Assembly: GCF_037042905.1 (NCBI RefSeq)
Contig: NC_087262.1
Span: forward strand, 23,312,001 to 23,376,000
DNA length: 64,000 bases
From: Lytechinus pictus
Taxonomy: Eukaryota
Reading direction: 5' to 3'
Shown here: positions 3,832 through 19,431 of the stretch, piece by piece
How the letters are laid out: each line of letters starts with the position of its first letter
How positions within the stretch are numbered: the stretch's first letter is position 1
Translations under genes and position numbers: made by a program
Notes under the pieces: model-generated
The model's input: only the letters and a program-made list of their open reading frames with translations
The model's database searches: none
Told to the model about the DNA's origin: nothing

Positions 3832-5188
3832 AAGATCAATACGATCATAATTTAGTACGCTGTTTGAATCGTGGGGCAATCGCGACAGTGGGAACTAAGT
3901 ATAACAAGTGACTTTCACTAGGAATGAACAATATTTTTCTTTATTAATTTTCAAATCTATTTTGCGGTTTGTTGTCAAACATCTGACGGTACAGCTGTAC
4001 TTAATTGTCTGCACACCTCATACTTGGGGCCGGTAACACAAAGCATAGCGATTGATCGTGAGACTGATCTCTGCGATTAATTACATTGAACACTGTACAT
4101 GATCAGTCGTAAAGGTCAACCCCACGATCAGTCTTTAAGCTTTATGTTACCCGGCTCTGATGCAATTATGGTAAGATATACGTGGAGTATATACCAGCAT
4201 AATTCTCAAAACAAACGAGAACATGATACATCTGAATCAACGTTTAATGGTTGGGAATGGTGAGCAATGCATGCATGGTTATTTTTATGTGTCTCAGTCG
4301 TATTTTTATATGGTGGTGGTGGGGGGGGGGGGGGAGATGGTACAAAACCAAAGGTATTTTTTCGACCTTCAGTAATAGGCCCTATATTATGATATTAAAT
4401 GAATCTTGTAATATTGCATTTTGAACATTTTAGAAAGTGATGGAAAATGGTCAACGAATGATATCAGGCGCATTCATCACTCGGGAGCAATACCAAAGTA
4501 TTATGATAGAGAGAGAGAGAGGGGGGGGGGGATAAGCGACTTTAACAGCACATGCGACGTAAATTTCCCCCTCTTAATTGAAATACATGGGTAACATGGG
4601 GTTACACAAAGCAGACTCTTCTCCTTACAATACTCTACGTGCTCTTTTTTTTTTTTTTCCCCTTTTATTCTTCACTTTTTACTACTTAAAATCATTGGGT
4701 GCGGTCGGCTCCTAATCCTCCCCCTACCGTAGCGTCACCCCACTTCATATCGAGTTTTATCCTCGTATGTTGCATTTGTGAACCTAATTGTTTTCAAACC
4801 CTCCCAATCTTCTTCCTCTTCTGGAAACAGTACAGGACACCGTCTGGTGTATTGTCGTACCCTCGATTCAAACGAAAATTTTCAATGGAAAGTTAACGCG
4901 AAAATCTATTTAAGAATATGAATATATAAGGGACGCTGATTCCCTTCCCCCCTCCCTACCCTTAAAACGTTTAAGTGCTACGCAGCTGCGTTTAAATTAC
5001 CTCGACTGTTTTCCAGCCGTATCAATTACGGGTATGGTATAATTATAGTGGTGTCTACGTCTGTAGTGTATTCAAACCAAGGACCAGCTGAAAATGAGAA
5101 GGTTGTAGTAAATATACACAAGATCTGTAAACGAAAACAAAAAAATGAAATAGAAATATTTCTACTAATCGCATTTAAATAGATCGTC

Positions 5189-8100
5189 ATGGATTCGGAT
5201 ACTTCAACGAACTTACAACGTCTGCCCGACATGGTAGCGCTACTACTAGATGATGTCGTGAAGTATTCAGTGTCGGCTTCAGGATTCGCGGTGTTGGTTG
5301 TCGTTTTCTTCGTGTATTGTGTCTGTTGTCATCGTCGAGATGGTAGCGAACGCGATGTCAACCGGGTGCCCTATGATTGCTTGTTTATCGGTAAGTCACT
5401 CATGATCATGATTTACCTCCAAAATGATATAGGAATGTGTTGCATTATTTGTAGTCCGTTATTTATTGGTTATTTGTAAATCACATTTTCGTACGCCACA
5501 TGCACAGTGTGAGACTAGATAAATCTTGTATTTATCAACCGGTATATTTAAAAGTAGTGAATACTAATCCATTTTCGATGAACCTTCACTTAAAGGTGAC
5601 TTTAATGAAGCTACAGTCATACCAACGGAAATGACCCCAAACCGCCAAATTTGATGTAATTGAACAGTGTTGAAAACAACTTCATGTCTTAAATCTGAAA
5701 TCTGTTTCACCTGTATGATTGTTGCTATTCATCCTTGATCTTTTAACTTCTGTAACATGGCAATCAACAGAGCCGTTAACAGAGTTCACCAAACCCGGTT
5801 TGGATGGGTTATACCAACATTGCGTACTTTCTTTTGAATTGGGGTTTTCGTATTAAAGAAAGTATTATGTGCAATTGAAATTCGGTTGGCAGAACTCTCT
5901 TTAATAATGGCTCTGGCAATCAAGTCTTAAAAGCGCCATCGATAAAAATATATTATGTTCCGCGGTACTCTGCGATTACTACCGAGGCCTGTAACGTCAT
6001 GCTTGTTTCTACTTCCCTCTCATTTATTTAGATACCACAATTCGCCACGCGATGTCATTGATCACGTGGTACTGCCGTGTACGGTTGAGACGTCACAACA
6101 TGGACACCGAAAATAGGAAGCTTCTTAATGAGATACACGCTTTGTGTCAGACTAAAGCAGCACAGCGCCCCCAAGATCAGCACCCGACCCTGATCAGTGC
6201 ATCCGTCAACACCAGTCTTGACCTATTCTTCCGGGTCCAGAAGTACCCACCGGGATCAGAGGTCATTGTGACCGCAATCAACACGTCCGACACCGTGCAG
6301 GTACTGCTGCATCATGGACTTCAGGTGATTCCTTTGGATGTTACAAGGGGTCAGCTCTCACCAGACCTTGAAGCCCTGAGGCTTCTCATCAATGAAAGCA
6401 CGGTGGCTATACTAGTGACGCACCTATTTGGGCGGGTGTGTGACCTGTCGGCCGTCACCGAACTCGCCCATGAGCATGGGGTTCATGTTCTTGAAGACTG
6501 TTCCCAGGCCTGCATGGCGCCAGCCTATTCCACGAATCCAGAATCTGATCTCGTATTCTTCAACTTTGGGGTGATCTACCCGTGCACTGCGTTCGGTGGC
6601 GGCATCACAAGGATCAAGGATAAATATCTCCTTGAGAAAATGGACAAACTACAGGAAACATATAGCCAAGGATCTGAAGTAGAGTATATCCGAAAGGCTT
6701 TTAAATGCACCTTAACCGCAAAAGCTCTCCAGTATCCTCGCCTTTTATCTATGTTTTCTTCTTTGGCCAGACTTGTTCTTGTTGATCTCAAAAAGATCGT
6801 CAATGATTCCTTAACATCGCCCCCTACGGCTGGTCTGGTGCGTAATATGCGTCAGAGTCCTCCAACTTCGATGACATTTATGCTTTTTCAAAGGTGAAAA
6901 ATAATATGTCTAGATCCACATCACTTTAATGTTTATTTAGATGTAAATCATTTTTAAAAATGAATGTTTATAATACATACACAATTCAGTCAAAATAATC
7001 TATGTATTTATTATTCATTTGTTTTTTAATTACGATCTAACCAATTTTACCTTATTTTTGATGGCAGCGAATAGCCACTGCCCGCGATCAAACTATAACT
7101 TTTCATTTTAGAAAGAGGGAAAAAGAACATCTTCATTCCTAAAAAGTTACTCAAAAATTCAATCCCTGTAAACTTGTTCATCAATACTAAATTAATTGAT
7201 GATAGAGATAATTTATGCCTGTGATATCGATGTCCCTTTCTTGTTGTTTCCACGAACAGATTAAAGCATTTCGACTCGAATGGCGTGGAGAGATCTCAAG
7301 ATGTCGGGGACTATGTTTCAGATAGGCTTCCGCAGGTAGCAGGTCAGATAGGCAACGACGCCCTCATTAGAGGATACTGGCTTTTCCCAATCCTTGTTGT
7401 GAGTACTCTTATGATTTTTCATTTTTGGATTACACTAATAGAAAGATATTAAAATCTTTCTTTACTATTTTTTTTCAAAGTCTAGAAGCATGATTATGTA
7501 TCTTTCTAAATTTTTCTTCCCCCTTTATCTCGTTTGTGAAAGACAGGGGATTGCAATTTTGAACTGTACGGAATAAGAAAAGCGATTTAGAATTCTTCGT
7601 TTCTTTCACTTATACTTCTTTATTGATTATGAATAGTAGTTCATTAAATACTGCAAGCGAATTTGGAATATATCACATGGAAATTAATTTTGAGAAAAAT
7701 GTTAAAACATAATTTGAACAGATATCAGCATACACCGTGAAGCGAATTCGGCATTTGCTATATCGATATTTAATTAACCGAACACATTTGTACATTTATG
7801 TATAGAAGAGTGTTCATATTCACTCCTCATTGATATCAACCATTAACATTGGTTCTTTTCTCCCTTTTGACCGATGATTTCTTAGGATAATCCAGATGAA
7901 GTCTGTCAGCGTCTCAATCGACTTGGTATCGCAGCTGCAAGAGGCCTTGCCCAGATCGAGCTAATTGTCTCCCCAAGTACAACTCCAGATGCTCCACCAA
8001 CGAATCTAGTAGGCATCGATGAGACCCGATGCCAACCTACCACGGCATCCTTCATCATGGACCACATCATCTACCTTCCCGTCCACCGAGGCGTACCGAG

Positions 8101-8344
8101 ACACCACCTCGATCAAGTCTGCCTAGCTGTTGAGATCGTCCTCAATAAGCTTGCCATCCTCGCCCGCTACCACGCCAGCCTTGGTTCGAGACAGAAGGAA
8201 ACGCATCATGGTCCATATGGACCGATCACACCAAGAAGGAACAAGGAATCGTGTCGGAGGCGGATGGTTTCGTCTAATCGAAACGCAACTTCAAAGATGC
8301 AGCAGGCCATCGCAGCTAACGCCAATAGAAACGATTTGACATAG
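5189..8344 (+). CDS. DegT/DnrJ/EryC1/StrS-family (PLP-dependent sugar aminotransferase fold) protein, 553 aa, N-terminal TM anchor, catalytic Lys apparently absent
   Basis: Exons 5189-5390, 6032-6893, 7260-7398, 7886-8344. All introns are GT-AG with matching phases (1, 2, 0); total 1662 nt. Motifs: PPGSEVIVTA, TVAILVTHLFG, HGVHVLEDCSQA, DLVFFNFGVIYPCTAFGGG, YWLFPILV, IIYLPVH. AATAAA at 8417. Confidence 0.85.
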
Positions 8345-10370
8345 CCATGATTCTCAAGTACCGTTCACACTTATACCTTCCGCCATGATCCGATTACGGG
8401 AATCAGTCTCTATATCAATAAATCCTAACATGATGTTCCTGGTTAAAGTTCTCGTGTGAGGTTCGACTTACTGTGAATCCTGGTGAGCTTTTCATCTACA
8501 TTGCCGTTTGAGTTATCAGATCTTACACTTTTGCTAAAATTTAATTGGCTTTGAAGCATATAAATATAGGTGTTGACTGGTGCTATGCTAACTGTAGGAT
8601 GCGTCGGATAAACGCCAATCATGAACGATCCCCGGAAAAATAATCACACAACTTCTCTGATGTCACTTTAACTTGGAACCATTAACATACTGCTTGGACC
8701 TTCTCAAAGAAGAAAGGCCTTTAATACTAATTTCTATTTTACTTTCGTTTACTTTCTCTTCAGATGTTACATGCGACTATTCAAAAACTCATACAACCAT
8801 TTCGAAGCTATACATGAAACGCATTTTAGGGGTCGAGAAGTAGTATGCGGTTTATATTATGAGTTATGTTCAATCTTTGCCATCAAATCAGAGAATTTCT
8901 AGAGGGATATTGCTTTGAAAAGACAAATATAAAAATAACTAAAGAAGGCTAGTTGATGGCACCGCAGGGTTACCAGTCAGCTAGATTATGGACGTCAAAC
9001 ATATCATCAAAACCTTGATGATATGAATAGTTCCCTCTTCCATGTCTTCCTTTTTAAGAAGTTCATTTTGCATTATAAGGAAAGTATCGAACATCGCCTT
9101 AAAAGAGTTTACCTCGCCCTTACTGCGGCAGCCCGAACACGTACTGTGTTCGGGCTGCGTTGTGATTCACCCCGGCTAACCAGATCAAACCAGATGAGCA
9201 TCGGGAATCAATCAAAAATACATAAAATTGCACAATTAAGGAATCAATACATACTTACAACTTAAGCCGCAATATGGGCGGCCCTCAAAACTTCGAAATA
9301 ATTCCCCAAAACGAAGCAAAAACGTCGGAAAATTTTGCCGGTGTGCATTAAAAGTCGTTTGTACAGGAAGCAATGGAGGATCGATATAGCCTTTTGACGA
9401 GGCAACGAGATAAATTGATTTTTATCTTCGTGCTAGCAGAAAACAAAAACATTGTCTCTATATTTAAATTAGTTTCTTTATCATCTTTTTTTTTTCGAGA
9501 GAGATTATGCACGTGGTGTCGCACATTTTTTTTAATATGCATAATTGAAAACAATTGATACACCTTGTGAGTAAAAAGATAATTTGATAGCCTATTTTAT
9601 GTGGTTTGTATTGACGCTTGAAATGATGAAGCCTATTCTTTGCAAATAATTTATTTCCTTGTATTATATTAAGAAGTACTAGTAATTTGATATCATTTCA
9701 TGTTTGTATTTTAGTATTATTCTATTGTTGTAAATTGTTGTACAAAATAATTATTCAGCCTTTGGCTGCGAGGCATGTTTTTAACAAACCATTATTGAAT
9801 TGATTTTAGCCATATATATGGCTGCTATTTTTTCAAGCATTCAGCTTACGGTAGCTGGTCTCTGCATTTGAATTCATTTGTTATTGTTTACATAAATTAT
9901 GTCTATATCTTCTTATAACCATAGGCGGCGGAAGTGGGGGCGGGGGGAGTATCCCCCCTAAATTTTAGGTGGGGTTACGAACCCCCCTAAATTTTTTGTT
10001 GATAACCTTTTTTTTTTGGCTTCAATTTTTTTTGCTTGTCATTTTTTTTTGCTTTTCAAAAAAATGTGGTGCCCCCTAAAATTGTTGGCTTCCACCGCCA
10101 ACTACATTGTCACCGTTGTAATTTGATCATTATGTATGTTTGATTTTAAATAATTGTTATAAATTTGCAATTTTGAATAAATGCAGAAATACCTGCTTTA
10201 AAAAGAAAGAGAAATGCTCGCATATATGACGTCACAAAAAAAATAAAATAAAACTCTATTATTAGCCCGGGGGTGGTGGCTCAACTTACCCCGCCTTCCC
10301 CTATATATATATATACATTTTTTTTTTTACCACAACCGGCTGGATACGTCTTTCTCAGGCAACATCTTCC

Positions 10371-15210: not shown

Positions 15211-17025
15211 TCTAAACGCATTTGAATGAAAAAAATAACTGTTCTGATATTTGATATAATCAATATTTAAGTGAGTCTTAATTTTGAAGTATTCCACCTC
15301 CGACCTGTTTGTCTCAGACAAGACACGTACAGCGAGTCATGTCTATAGATAGGGGGAATACAAAGCTTTTACTGCTTTTCAAACACGTCAAAATGTCAAT
15401 TTGATATCAGTGATGGTTGTGAAAGCAGCGTGAATATAGCATATCCAGCAAATTGGATTGGTAGGTGAGGTCTATAAGTTGGATAGGGGATTCTTTCATT
15501 TTTTTCTTAAAAAAAGGTGCAGTGTTGCATTTTGGTGCTATATTTTGTGATTTCTCAATTATTGTCACTGAAATTTACGCTTGCACATCTATTTCATTTG
15601 TGCTATAAATTTCCAGAGGGTCTTTTCTGACGATGCAGTCGGTGCCTTAACAATCTCTTAAGCTGAGCTGCCCGATTGATATCTGAACATGAATGTGATT
15701 CATGTAGTTCAGACGTTCATTGATTGGCCTATGTCAGTTATTTTTCTACATCATATTTTACATCCTGTCGATTAATTTGAATTCCAGTTTACAGTACTTT
15801 ATTCTTTTGATAATTATTTTTCTCTATATGTTTCTTGATATATTCTGAATTTAATTTTCCGAAATAAATTGGGAGTGAGTTCTCCAAGCCCCTTCCATAT
15901 CCGCCCACTGTTCAGCATTTTCGTACATCAATATATTTTCCACTCTTCTTTTGTGGATTCGTTTGGTTGCCAGCCCATGGTCAATGAAAGTAGAATCAAT
16001 TAAATGAATTTTCCATTCATTACAATCCAGCTTCTTACTATAATCCACACGGACGCGTTTAAAATAAATTACCAAACATTCCCCGAGACCTGCAGGATAA
16101 CACAAGTACTGTAAAGAGCTCATTTGGCTTTTCCCCTGTAAAAGAAACTGATGTACTCGAAATCATACGAAATTTAAGAAACACGAAATCAGTGGGACTG
16201 GATGGCATTTCTGTATTCGTTTTGAAATTATGTGCTTACGAAATAACACCCAGCATCACCTATTTGATAAACTTCTCGTTGAAATCGGGCAAATTTCCCA
16301 AACAATGGAAGATTGCAAAATTCATCCCAATTCATAAAAGTGGAGATAAAACAATTCCATCAAATTTTAGACCCATCTCCCTCATTCCTTGTGTGTCAAA
16401 ATTTTTAGAACGTATAGTTCAGAGGCAGGTCCTCTCGTACCTACATATTCACAATATTCTCTCGCCGGCACAATCCGGTTTCCGGGCAAAGCATTCAACG
16501 ATCACAACATTGATCAAGGTAACTGATGACTGGTACCATGCAATTGATAAGAAAGAGTATACCGGTGCGGTGTTTGTCGATCTCAAAAAGGCCTTCGACA
16601 CCGTAGACTGGGGAATTCTTCTAAAGAAGCTTACTAATATTGGGATAAAGGGTACTCCATTGCTATGGATGGAAAGTTACTTGACCGACATAATTTGTAG
16701 GACGCTTGTCAACTCTGAGCTTTCTGCAGAATCTAACATTACCTGCGGAGTCCCGCAAGGTTCACTGCTAGGACCACTATTTTCATCATGTACATAAATG
16801 ATTTAATGGACTGTGTGGAATTATGTCAGGTTCAATTGTACGCCGATGACACGGTTCTTTACTTTTCTCACCCATCTATCCAAAACGTAGAGTCAGCTCT
16901 TAACTCCGACCTGGAGAATGTTCATAAGTGGATGAATAATAACAAACTGAGTGTCAATTGTAATAAAACAGAATGCATCCTAATCGGAAGTAAACATATG
17001 CTTGCTAAGAAATGTCTTGAATGTA

Positions 17026-17221
17026 CACTCTTAAAAATGTTGGGCAACATACGGTCCACACAACAATTGGTTAAAACTTTATCCAATTCTGGGTAGTTTT
17101 ACACCAATAATGTGTGCTTTGGGTGAAAACTACACAGTATTGGTGTAAAACTACCCAGAATTGGATAAAGTTTTAACCAATTGTTGTGTGGACCGTATGT
17201 TGCCCAACATTTTTAAGAGTG
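17026..17221. mobile_element. 196-bp palindromic CACT-ended MITE inserted in the LINE
   Basis: 84-bp perfect TIRs (17026-17109 and 17138-17221), 28-bp spacer, TA duplication. Removing it restores LINE codons N-V-T-L-N-N. Confidence 0.92.
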
Positions 17222-17819
17222 TAACATTAAACAATTCCCGTATAAACCAAGTGCGTGAATTTAAGTACTTAGGACTGATTTGTGATGAAACTTTGACCTG
17301 GAATAAACATATCGAAAAACTAGTCCAGAAAGTAAGTAAGATGGTTGGTTTTCTAGGACGATTAAGACGCTCGTTGAATGAATCAGTTGTAAACTCCATT
17401 TATAAGTCTCTTTTACTCCCATATTTTGATTATGGTGACGTAATACACAGCTCAGCATGTAATAAATATATCGAACAACTCCAGAAGGTACAGAACAGAG
17501 CAGCTCGTATCATAATAAGAGTAAAATCAGAGTCACACATATCTGTCGCTGAGTTGCATAATTCTCTGGGCTGGCAATTTCTTAACAAAAGGAGAAATCA
17601 GCATTGTATTGTTTTTATGTACAAGGTAATGCACGAACTAACTCCTCAGTATTTACGTAATGAATTCACGGTCGCACCTCAATATTACTCTTTTCGTTAT
17701 GGCGAAAAACTACTTTTACCTAAACCACGGACAGAATTCCTTAAGAAATCCTTTAAATATAGAGGTGCCAAGGTATATAATGCCCTACCTTTGGACTTAA
17801 AATTGTCTCCTACTGTTAA

Positions 17820-19431
17820 AGTTGAATTAAGAAGGGGGTGAGTTTCCATAAATATGGGTTCCACACACAATATATAGTATATATCAGTTGTTAAAACAGA
17901 TAGCATGTCACAAAAATCCTCTGCCTTCTCGATATTTTGCTTTGAAAGTCTATGAAATTAGCCACCTGTCAGAGCCCGAGAGACGAGTGTACAGAAAAAT
18001 CACTCGGAGTGTGACGTCACCGGAGGGAATTAAGTATAAGAGGTGCCCGAATGTAATACAGAAATGCTATGCAGAGAGAGAAAGATGATTTTACAATTTT
18101 TTTTCAAAGCAACTCAAATCAAACAAATAGGACTCGTATGTACAAATCTTTACTTTCCCTGTATAAAAAACAGTATGAATAACTATCATGAACTCTTAAA
18201 TCATGATGTAAGATTGCAAACAGTGAGTTATTGAATGATACTTTCACTATTTCTCATTTATTTTATCACGATGTTCCATCAAGTGAGTAGCTGGAAAGTA
18301 ATTCCGGCGGCTAGCTCAGCTCTGCGCGCGCTGCACGCCTATACAATACACACAACACCCAGGCATTGAGTGTACTATGTCGACCCGCAGTTCATGACCA
18401 TGCAGCGATCCCCTGGCGTCTCTTTCTTCTTTCTTTTTGTCTTTGACTCCATTTTTATATCCTCTGGATCATTTCCACTCATAGCTCATTCCACAGAACA
18501 ATCTTGAATCAAACGTACTATTCTTCTCGGCCTTCCGAGTTGTTTTCTATATTTAATTACGCTAGGGGTCACCGTCACACATACAGACGCAATTCGCAAG
18601 TGAGTTGAAGACAGCAAGAAAGGTATGCGGTACGGTAGCTCGACAGCTAGCTGTGCCGGAGCGGGCGGCCGTTCGGCACAAAGCAATTCCGCAACCAACT
18701 GTGTTTTTTGCAAGAGCCGCGTCACACGCGGATAAATATGTCATAATAACACGTCTGCTACGTTATCGACTGGTGAGAAGATCTCGATCAAATTTCATAT
18801 TTATTCGCATTAAAATTATTCCTTTAGGGTCTATGGTATCATTCTGAGTGAATTTACATATTTGGAATAATAGTACGGCCATAAATATACTTTTAATCAT
18901 TCCCTCTTTGCAAGTTCTCCGGCTCGCAGATACAACTTCAACTGCAGTTTATTCCATTATATGACTTGTTTCGCCACGGACACAGTCCCGAAAGAAAACA
19001 GGGCGTTAAAATCGTCTAAAATCGCTACGAAGAAGAACAGTTTTAACAATGTAGGGACATGTTATTGACTATATGACTTTGAATAATCATTACTTCCTTT
19101 CAATATCGTTCACATAAAATCAATAGCGATAAAATGAAGTTTTGACACAAAAGTAAACATGAAGGCGTACGTGCATAGTACACAAAGCAGCACTGCCTTG
19201 TTTACTACACCGGGACCGAATACCCCCCGGTGACGTCACACTCAGAGAACACCTGTCTCGGTAGGCATTGCAGGAGCGAACTCAGGGAAAATGGTTAGGG
19301 ATAAATCGTTAAAATTCACTATTTTGAAAAACTAAAATGGGGGGTCGAATCACCTCTTAGTGTTTGGGGGGTTGTAAGGTTGCTATTAATGTAAATATCT
19401 CAATATTTGGAATCGTCTTCTTAATTCAACT
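17820..19431. mobile_element. Kolobok-type non-autonomous DNA transposon (1612 bp) inserted in the LINE
   Basis: TTAA TSD (17816-17819, 19432-19435); 15-bp TIR AGTTGAATTAAGAAG / CTTCTTAATTCAACT; subterminal inverted GAGTGTGACGTCACCGG (~18007 and ~19228). Removing it rejoins SPTV-NNFKTKL. Confidence 0.88.

Follow-up and report, generated by a model that had tools for sequence, protein, structure and literature searches.

Bacterial sugar aminotransferases of the Pfam family PF01041 (DegT/DnrJ/EryC1/StrS), such as WecE (4piw), perosamine synthase (3bn1/3dr4), ArnB (1mdo) and PseC (2fnu), share the two-domain fold type I architecture of enzymes that bind pyridoxal 5'-phosphate (PLP) through a Schiff-base lysine. 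In DegT-type enzymes, which are dimeric, the active sites lie where the two subunits meet. Two members of the family, the 3-dehydratases ColD and E1 that depend on pyridoxamine 5'-phosphate (PMP), lack this lysine and yet are functional. Among other fold type I proteins, SPTLC1 (LCB1) is an enzyme paralogue without the PLP-binding Lys and without other catalytic residues (PMC3794620). Lys-less paralogues of PLP enzymes are thus already known, whereas our literature search turned up none described among the DegT sugar aminotransferases and none in animals. Here we describe a gene of the sea urchin Lytechinus pictus, located on the + strand at positions 5189-8344 of a window of 64,000 nucleotides (NC_087262.1, positions 23,312,001 to 23,376,000), whose product has tyrosine in place of the Schiff-base Lys and is probably a conserved, membrane-anchored pseudoenzyme. 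The same search found no paper on this gene, on a Lys-less DegT-family clade, or on the parent family with its C-terminal -SKL.

The substitution lies at 6577-6579 (+ strand), where the codon TAC encodes Tyr250 within the motif F-N-F-G-V-I-Y-P-C-T-A-F-G-G-G. In a phmmer comparison with the PDB, F-S-F-H-E-T-K of WecE pairs with F-N-F-G-V-I-Y, and Tyr250 therefore stands opposite the catalytic lysine, as a sequence-only reading of this DNA had proposed. In a 114-sequence family alignment this column holds Lys in 108 out of 108 sequences outside the clade to which the protein belongs, and a motif scan returned Lys in 136 of 142 matches (typically F-S-F-G-x-I-K-x-x-T-A-x-G-G). RNA-type contigs from two studies show no difference at 6577-6579, and the L. 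pictus protein P0151 has Tyr as well.

The loss of Lys is accompanied by other changes, which we evaluated by taking all columns whose conservation reaches 80% or more in the 108 Lys-bearing sequences and reading the residues of the six clade members there. Changed positions that are invariant or nearly invariant in the family concentrate at the Lys motif and its surroundings. In the S-F-G-x-I-K strand, the Ser that is invariant in the family is Asn245 here (6562..6564, + strand) and N, N, S, D, D, S across the clade; Gly247 has become Asp in four clade members, and the Lytechinus protein retains Gly. Asn127 (6208..6210, + strand) takes the place of the Arg of the S-V-R-T motif, which 99% of the family have in this column; the clade has Asn or Lys. 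In the WecE alignment this column lies in the S-C-T-A-S-L stretch, which we take to be the G-T/S phosphate-binding motif of DegT enzymes. The R-G-F loop, with Arg329 and Phe331 conserved at 89% and 91% outside the clade, is replaced by L-T-S-P-P (6811..6825, + strand), and the clade pattern is T-x-P or T/I-x-E (Thr or Ile for Arg329, Pro or Glu for Phe331). Altogether, the subfamily-invariant residues Arg127, Ala225, Ser245, Gly247 and Lys250 correspond here to Asn, Ser, Asn, Gly and Tyr, so that four of the five differ. The cofactor motif was noted as kept from the sequence alone, and it is: E-D-C-S-Q at 6493..6507 (+ strand) includes Asp223, identical in all 114 aligned sequences, although Ala225 is Ser in all six clade members. 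The kept scaffold positions are D131, H162, G201, E222, D223, F246, T253, G257, R341, W395, P398, G415 and P466. Judging from the WecE alignment and family knowledge, positions 127 and 245 would be at the phosphate site and Asp223 at the pyridine nitrogen.

Searching exhaustively with exon 2 (HMMER) gave 8215 relatives, among them the members of the Lys-less clade. These are P0151 of L. pictus (553 aa, differing from the gene model by 6 residues), P0001 of Strongylocentrotus purpuratus (461 aa, 79% identity), P0002 of Diadema antillarum (564 aa, 55%), P0158 of Holothuria leucospilota (588 aa, ~40%), the holothurian-like P0152 (405 aa, ~41%) and P0003 of Antedon mediterranea (525 aa, 43%). Annotation of the named entries goes no further than "uncharacterised" or "hypothetical". 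The former Lys column is occupied by Tyr in Lytechinus and S. purpuratus, His in Diadema, Arg in Holothuria and P0152, and Gln in Antedon; with four residue types in six sequences, it is among the 24% most variable core columns. In an IQ-TREE phylogeny (53 rows, 429 columns; a quick tree was made as well), the Lys-less echinoderm proteins form one clade with support 100/100 and a stem of 0.48. They are nested with Lys-bearing proteins of Saccoglossus and echinoderms in an ambulacrarian clade (97/93), within a eukaryote-side clade (100/99). The order inside the Lys-less clade is that of the species tree, Antedon branching first, followed by holothurians plus echinoids. The codon path AAR (Lys) to CAR (Gln) to CAY (His) to TAY (Tyr) involves one substitution per step, and its order matches the branching of the crinoid, Diadema and the camarodont urchins, which suggests that Tyr, although two substitutions from Lys, was reached by drift at a dispensable site. 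A metagenomic protein of 438 aa ending in -SKI (P0157) has Arg in the Lys column (L-S-F-G-M-L-R-H-Y-T-S-F-G-G) and may represent an independent loss of Lys outside the named echinoderm clade.

The Lys-bearing relatives fall into two sides. The prokaryote side includes a Planctomycetota protein, and the eukaryote side has members in Octopus, Nucella, Strigamia, Saccoglossus, Acanthaster, Amphiura, Antedon and Diadema; the proteins from the first seven of these genera are annotated as uncharacterised, as is P0028 (below). The C-terminal tripeptide -SKL is the type 1 peroxisomal targeting signal (PTS1). PTS1-like tails, mostly -SKL, occur in 30 of 38 Lys-bearing eukaryote-side rows, in one of 30 prokaryote-side rows and in none of the seven rows of the Lys-less clade; the protein described here ends in -D-L-T. 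Because of the -SKL tails, the parent family is probably peroxisomal. Six-frame searches of the same 812-Mb genome revealed one further locus (C4:20064672-20074239), which is intact and encodes the 725-aa protein P0028 (92-99% identity per exon). Its Lys motif is F-F-S-F-G-L-I-K-T-N-T-A-F-G-G and it ends in -SKL, so a Lys-retaining and a Lys-less paralogue do coexist in one genome, a point on which the sequence-only reading had called for a check. Lytechinus, Diadema and Antedon each have both paralogues. All other living echinoderms together form the sister group of crinoids, and since a crinoid and echinoids have both copies, the duplication took place no later than in the last common ancestor of living echinoderms.

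The two paralogues also share their introns. P0028 has introns after M-L-Y-R-R and after F-P-I-V-V (before D-N-P), which are the positions of introns 2 and 3 of the present gene, and the AG acceptor of its first matched exon interrupts, as G|AT, the Asp codon that intron 1 also interrupts. With three shared intron positions, the duplicated gene must already have been intron-bearing. The suggested history of an old horizontal transfer followed by intron gain thus does not hold for this gene, which is a duplicate of an animal gene that already had introns. A recent horizontal transfer into it was likewise rejected, because of the introns shared with the paralogue and the broad animal distribution of the family. 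The eukaryotic family as a whole might have an ancient bacterial origin.

Several features of the Lys-bearing copies were observed in passing. The annotated N-terminus of P0028, M-I-K-E-T-H-L-F-I-F-K (C4, ~20064630-20064680), resembles a polypyrimidine tract and AG acceptor read through as coding sequence, and a search of the 1.5 kb upstream did not find the true first coding exon, which would encode the V-P-Y-x-C-L motif. The echinoid Lys-bearing paralogues (P0010/P0159 of Diadema and P0028) carry a Ser-rich insertion of 250-300 residues, which in P0028 is placed ahead of the final strand and helix of the small domain. In Diadema, the Lys-bearing copy ends in -GHL, not -SKL.

The Lys-less copy has been maintained since the duplication. 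The split between crinoids and echinoids represents several hundred million years of separate evolution. Summed branch lengths between Lytechinus and Antedon are 1.41 for the Lys-less copy and 1.36 for the Lys-bearing copy, and those between Lytechinus and Diadema are 0.71 and 0.85, respectively; after the burst on the stem, both paralogues evolved at similar rates. Across the clade, 90 of 342 ungapped core columns are invariant. Selection was measured on polymorphism, by comparing the contigs of sequencing runs with the window; exact-protein look-ups returned no coding DNA of L. pictus or S. purpuratus orthologues. Among 25 single-base differences in the coding sequence, 14 are synonymous and 11 non-synonymous (396 and 1263 sites), giving a ratio of non-synonymous to synonymous polymorphism per site (pN/pS) of 0.25. 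These results support a protein that is conserved, transcribed and under purifying selection. The sequence-only reading had set against itself the case of an untranscribed copy, with a ratio of non-synonymous to synonymous substitution near 1 and orthologues that all have Lys; what we observed is a Lys-less clade, spliced contigs and the low pN/pS.

Family membership and fold agree with what the sequence alone had indicated. Exon 2 matches PF01041 with an E-value of 4.7e-24 and 85.7 bits, and P0151 scores 88.3 bits, against a cut-off of 19.8. The NCBIfam sugar-aminotransferase models match weakly (~50 bits, cut-offs 375-650), and no NCBIfam equivalog scores above its cut-off for the Lys-less copy or for its Lys-bearing relatives. 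An AlphaFold2 model was built on P0151 (99% identical to the gene product) from the 114-row alignment. It has a mean predicted local distance difference test score (pLDDT) of 86.4, mostly >90 in the part encoded by exon 2, and a predicted template modelling score of 0.83; low confidence is limited to the N-terminus, one loop (~430-450) and the tail. The top Foldseek matches of this model in the PDB are DegT-type aminotransferases only (perosamine synthase, ArnB, DesV and WecE, probability 1.0); among the matches listed, template modelling scores normalised by the target range from 0.63 to 0.76 and identities from 14 to 19%. Given these matches, both domains of the two-domain fold type I architecture appear intact in the model.

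The N-terminus sets the Lys-less copies apart from the parent family. A transmembrane helix is predicted at aa 31-47 (5279..5329, + strand), followed by Cys-Cys-His-Arg-Arg; the model has a helix at 30-48, and the best 19-aa window has a mean Kyte-Doolittle hydropathy of 2.47. Every full-length clade member has such an N-terminal hydrophobic segment of 19 residues (hydropathy 2.3-2.7), whereas in the Lys-bearing relatives the maxima do not exceed 1.8 and are confined to core strands, with no transmembrane helix. An acidic stretch precedes the helix, and Lys and Arg residues number one on its N side and four on its C side. By the positive-inside rule, these counts suggest that the protein is probably inserted N-out/C-in, with the DegT-like domain facing the cytosol. 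Cys residues at the predicted cytosolic end of the helix recur across the clade, and one may speculate that they are acylated. The C-terminal tail of the Lytechinus protein (pLDDT <50) contains the motifs G-P-Y-G-P (aa 510-514) and R-R-R-M-V-S-S (aa 525-531), together spanning 8210..8275 (+ strand). The tails of P0002 (Diadema), P0158 (Holothuria), P0152 and P0003 (Antedon) contain [RK][RK][RK]-x-V-[ST]-F; those of Lytechinus (R-R-R-M-V-S-S, 8255-8275) and S. purpuratus (R-R-R-T-V-S-V) are without the aromatic residue. The motif in the orthologue tails would match the RVxF consensus for docking to protein phosphatase 1 (PP1).

The gene consists of four coding exons on the + strand, separated by three GT..AG introns. 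Exon 1 (5189..5390; aa 1-67 plus 1 nucleotide) encodes the acidic N-terminus, the transmembrane helix and the start of the conserved V-P-Y-x-C-L-x-I-D. Intron 1 (5391..6031) is in phase 1 and splits the Asp68 codon. Exon 2 (6032..6893; aa 68-355) covers the large PLP-type domain of the DegT fold, with the PF01041 match, and the next helices. It is followed by intron 2 (6894..7259), exon 3 (7260..7398; aa 355-401), which has the conserved Y-W-L-F-P-I-L-V at its end, and intron 3 (7399..7885, phase 0). Exon 4 (7886..8344; aa 402-553 plus stop) encodes the small domain, a clade-specific helix (L-A-V-E-I-V-L-N-K-L-A-I-L) and the disordered basic tail. Joined, the exons give a frame of 1662 nucleotides (553 codons plus stop), closed upstream by an in-frame TAG at 5180-5182, nine nucleotides 5' of the ATG. 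The spliced 553-residue frame proposed from the sequence alone is therefore borne out.

Transcript evidence comes from the RNA-type contigs of two runs (X1 and X15) from two studies, mapped on 4400-9400. In both runs the contigs cover exons only, with zero depth across all three introns, and their junctions coincide exactly with those predicted (5389/6031 with cut +1, 6891/7258 with cut +2, and 7398/7886). The exon-only coverage and exact junctions indicate that both runs contain spliced mRNA. The 5' untranslated region extends at least over 5088..5188 (+ strand; spliced contigs start at 5088 in X1 and 5095 in X15), and the 3' untranslated region at least over 8345..9148 (+ strand; overlapping contigs are unbroken to ~9148 in X15 and 8991 in X1). 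In the RNA runs, the stretches at ~4817-4860 and ~9120-9400, which flank the gene, show summed contig depths from 131 to >900 with many loose ends, and most likely represent dispersed repeats shared by many transcripts. Farther downstream on the + strand, open frames of 201 and 226 aa (16192-16797 and 17161-17841) resemble pieces of a non-LTR (long terminal repeat) retrotransposon reverse transcriptase.

We regard it as probable that the gene encodes a conserved pseudoenzyme, a membrane-anchored protein of the DegT fold in which no internal PLP aldimine can form and which likely acts by binding. A eukaryotic Lys-bearing DegT-like gene, belonging to a family that is mostly -SKL-tagged, was duplicated by the time of the last common ancestor of crinoids and sea urchins. 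The Lys-less copy, which has no PTS1, gained the N-terminal transmembrane helix, and its Schiff-base Lys was replaced, together with several neighbouring invariant residues, along one long stem branch. The helix would anchor the protein N-out/C-in, leaving the dead domain on the cytosolic side. The binding partner there may be another protein or a ligand resembling the ancestral substrate, and the disordered basic tail may contribute.

Several observations weigh against this explanation. Positions 127, 245 and 329-331 were assigned to the cofactor site from alignment and family knowledge. With Asp223, Glu222 and Gln226 kept, and with neutral Asn rather than acidic residues at 127 and 245 in Lytechinus, non-covalent binding of PLP or PMP is possible. 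Three lysines (Lys263, Lys292 and Lys489) are invariant in the clade, and another Lys might reach the cofactor site. In the raw RNA-seq runs X19 and X20 (~6% sampled), a couple of reads fell on exon 1 and none elsewhere. Finally, the Lys-less clade may not be universal in echinoderms: no asteroid or ophiuroid members were found, in searches with a clade profile and the Holothuria C-terminus (word-indexed) that also missed known members. As for Lys263, the model places it at the far end of a hairpin strand (258-262), and among aligned Lys-bearing relatives its column varies (K, R, N, H or G); for both reasons it is unlikely to substitute for the lost Lys.

A special case of the pseudoenzyme explanation, to which we give a low though appreciable probability, is that the protein serves as the non-catalytic, membrane-anchoring subunit of a heterodimer with its Lys-bearing paralogue, by analogy with SPTLC1. 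In such a pair, which would have at most one working site, the enzyme copy would be tethered to a membrane by the dead subunit or kept outside peroxisomes. Both partners are available in Lytechinus, Diadema and Antedon, the transmembrane anchor is on the dead copy and not on the live one, and serine palmitoyltransferase sets the precedent of a Lys-less and a Lys-bearing paralogue paired around a single active site (PMC3794620). However, the R-G-F loop is degenerate in the dead copy, so a mixed site would be impaired if this loop extends into the site of the partner, as it does in other DegT dimers. The live paralogue, moreover, carries a signal for the peroxisomal matrix, which is not the compartment of a cytosol-facing anchor unless the membrane holding the anchor is itself peroxisomal. 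A complex prediction for the dead and live proteins of Antedon, run without controls, scored 0.00 and gave no support; it is not evidence either way. Somewhat less probable still is a more detailed proposal, in which the dead copy and its -SKL paralogue would form a membrane-tethered single-site enzyme, or the paralogue would be retained on the cytosolic face and its peroxisomal import thereby gated, ancestrally perhaps with coupling to PP1 via the RVxF-like tail. If true, an SPTLC1-like solution would have evolved independently in the DegT family, confined to echinoderms.

We consider it improbable that the protein is still an enzyme with Lys-independent chemistry, holding PMP tightly but non-covalently as ColD and E1 do and using the Lys-column residue as acid or base. 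Asp223, Glu222 and Gln226 of the cofactor motif are indeed kept, like ColD and E1, the Diadema orthologue carries His at the position of the Lys, and the structures of these two enzymes are among the sequence matches (E ~1e-7). Nevertheless, the column varies among Tyr, His, Arg and Gln within one clade, so that the would-be catalytic residue is not conserved, which makes such chemistry unlikely. Moreover, Arg127, Ser245 and Gly247 are replaced, with Asp in holothurians, and the gene is nested not with ColD and E1 but in a different subfamily, the members of which all keep Lys. Between the two options left by the sequence-only reading, a dead protein is thus favoured by the clade-wide loss of Lys, the variable residue in its place and the loss of other invariant residues, whereas the ColD/E1 option is weakened by the restriction of His to Diadema. 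A decaying or neutrally drifting duplicate, such as a young pseudogene with its frame open by chance, would accord with the lost Lys and the few reads in two raw RNA-seq runs, but is very improbable, since gene decay is excluded by intact orthologues in echinoids, a holothurian and a crinoid, spliced transcripts in two studies, the low pN/pS, branch lengths equal to those of the enzyme paralogue and the invariant core columns.

The gene itself is already in public annotation as an uncharacterised protein. It comes with a built-in control, the live paralogue of the same genome, and with a clear switch of targeting, in which a membrane anchor has taken the place of a peroxisomal tail. The case also points to the parent family, a widespread DegT-like enzyme of invertebrates that is probably peroxisomal, and sea urchins are experimentally tractable.

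The comparison with known systems can be summarised as follows. Bacterial sugar aminotransferases resemble the protein in the E-D-x-x-Q motif with its Asp and in the geometry of the S-F-x-x-x-K strand, at 14-19% identity. They differ from it in that the Lytechinus protein has Tyr for Lys and Asn for the strand Ser, and an additional N-terminal transmembrane helix, inter-domain helices and a long basic tail. The eukaryotic PTS1-tagged DegT-like proteins are the direct parent family, with 30-39% identity over the whole domain and with V-P-Y-x-C-L-x-I-D, Y-W-L-F-P, Y-L-P-V-H and three intron positions in common; unlike the Lys-less copy, they retain the R-G-F loop along with Lys, Arg127 and Ser245, lack a transmembrane helix and in most cases have -SKL at the C-terminus. 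ColD and E1 share with it the absence of Lys within PF01041, but they carry a conserved catalytic His, where this clade is variable. SPTLC1 has an N-terminal transmembrane helix and is membrane-bound, as is predicted for the Lytechinus protein; both are Lys-less and maintained by selection. It belongs, however, to the alpha-oxoamine synthases and not to PF01041, and the heterodimer that is established for SPTLC1 is only an analogy here.

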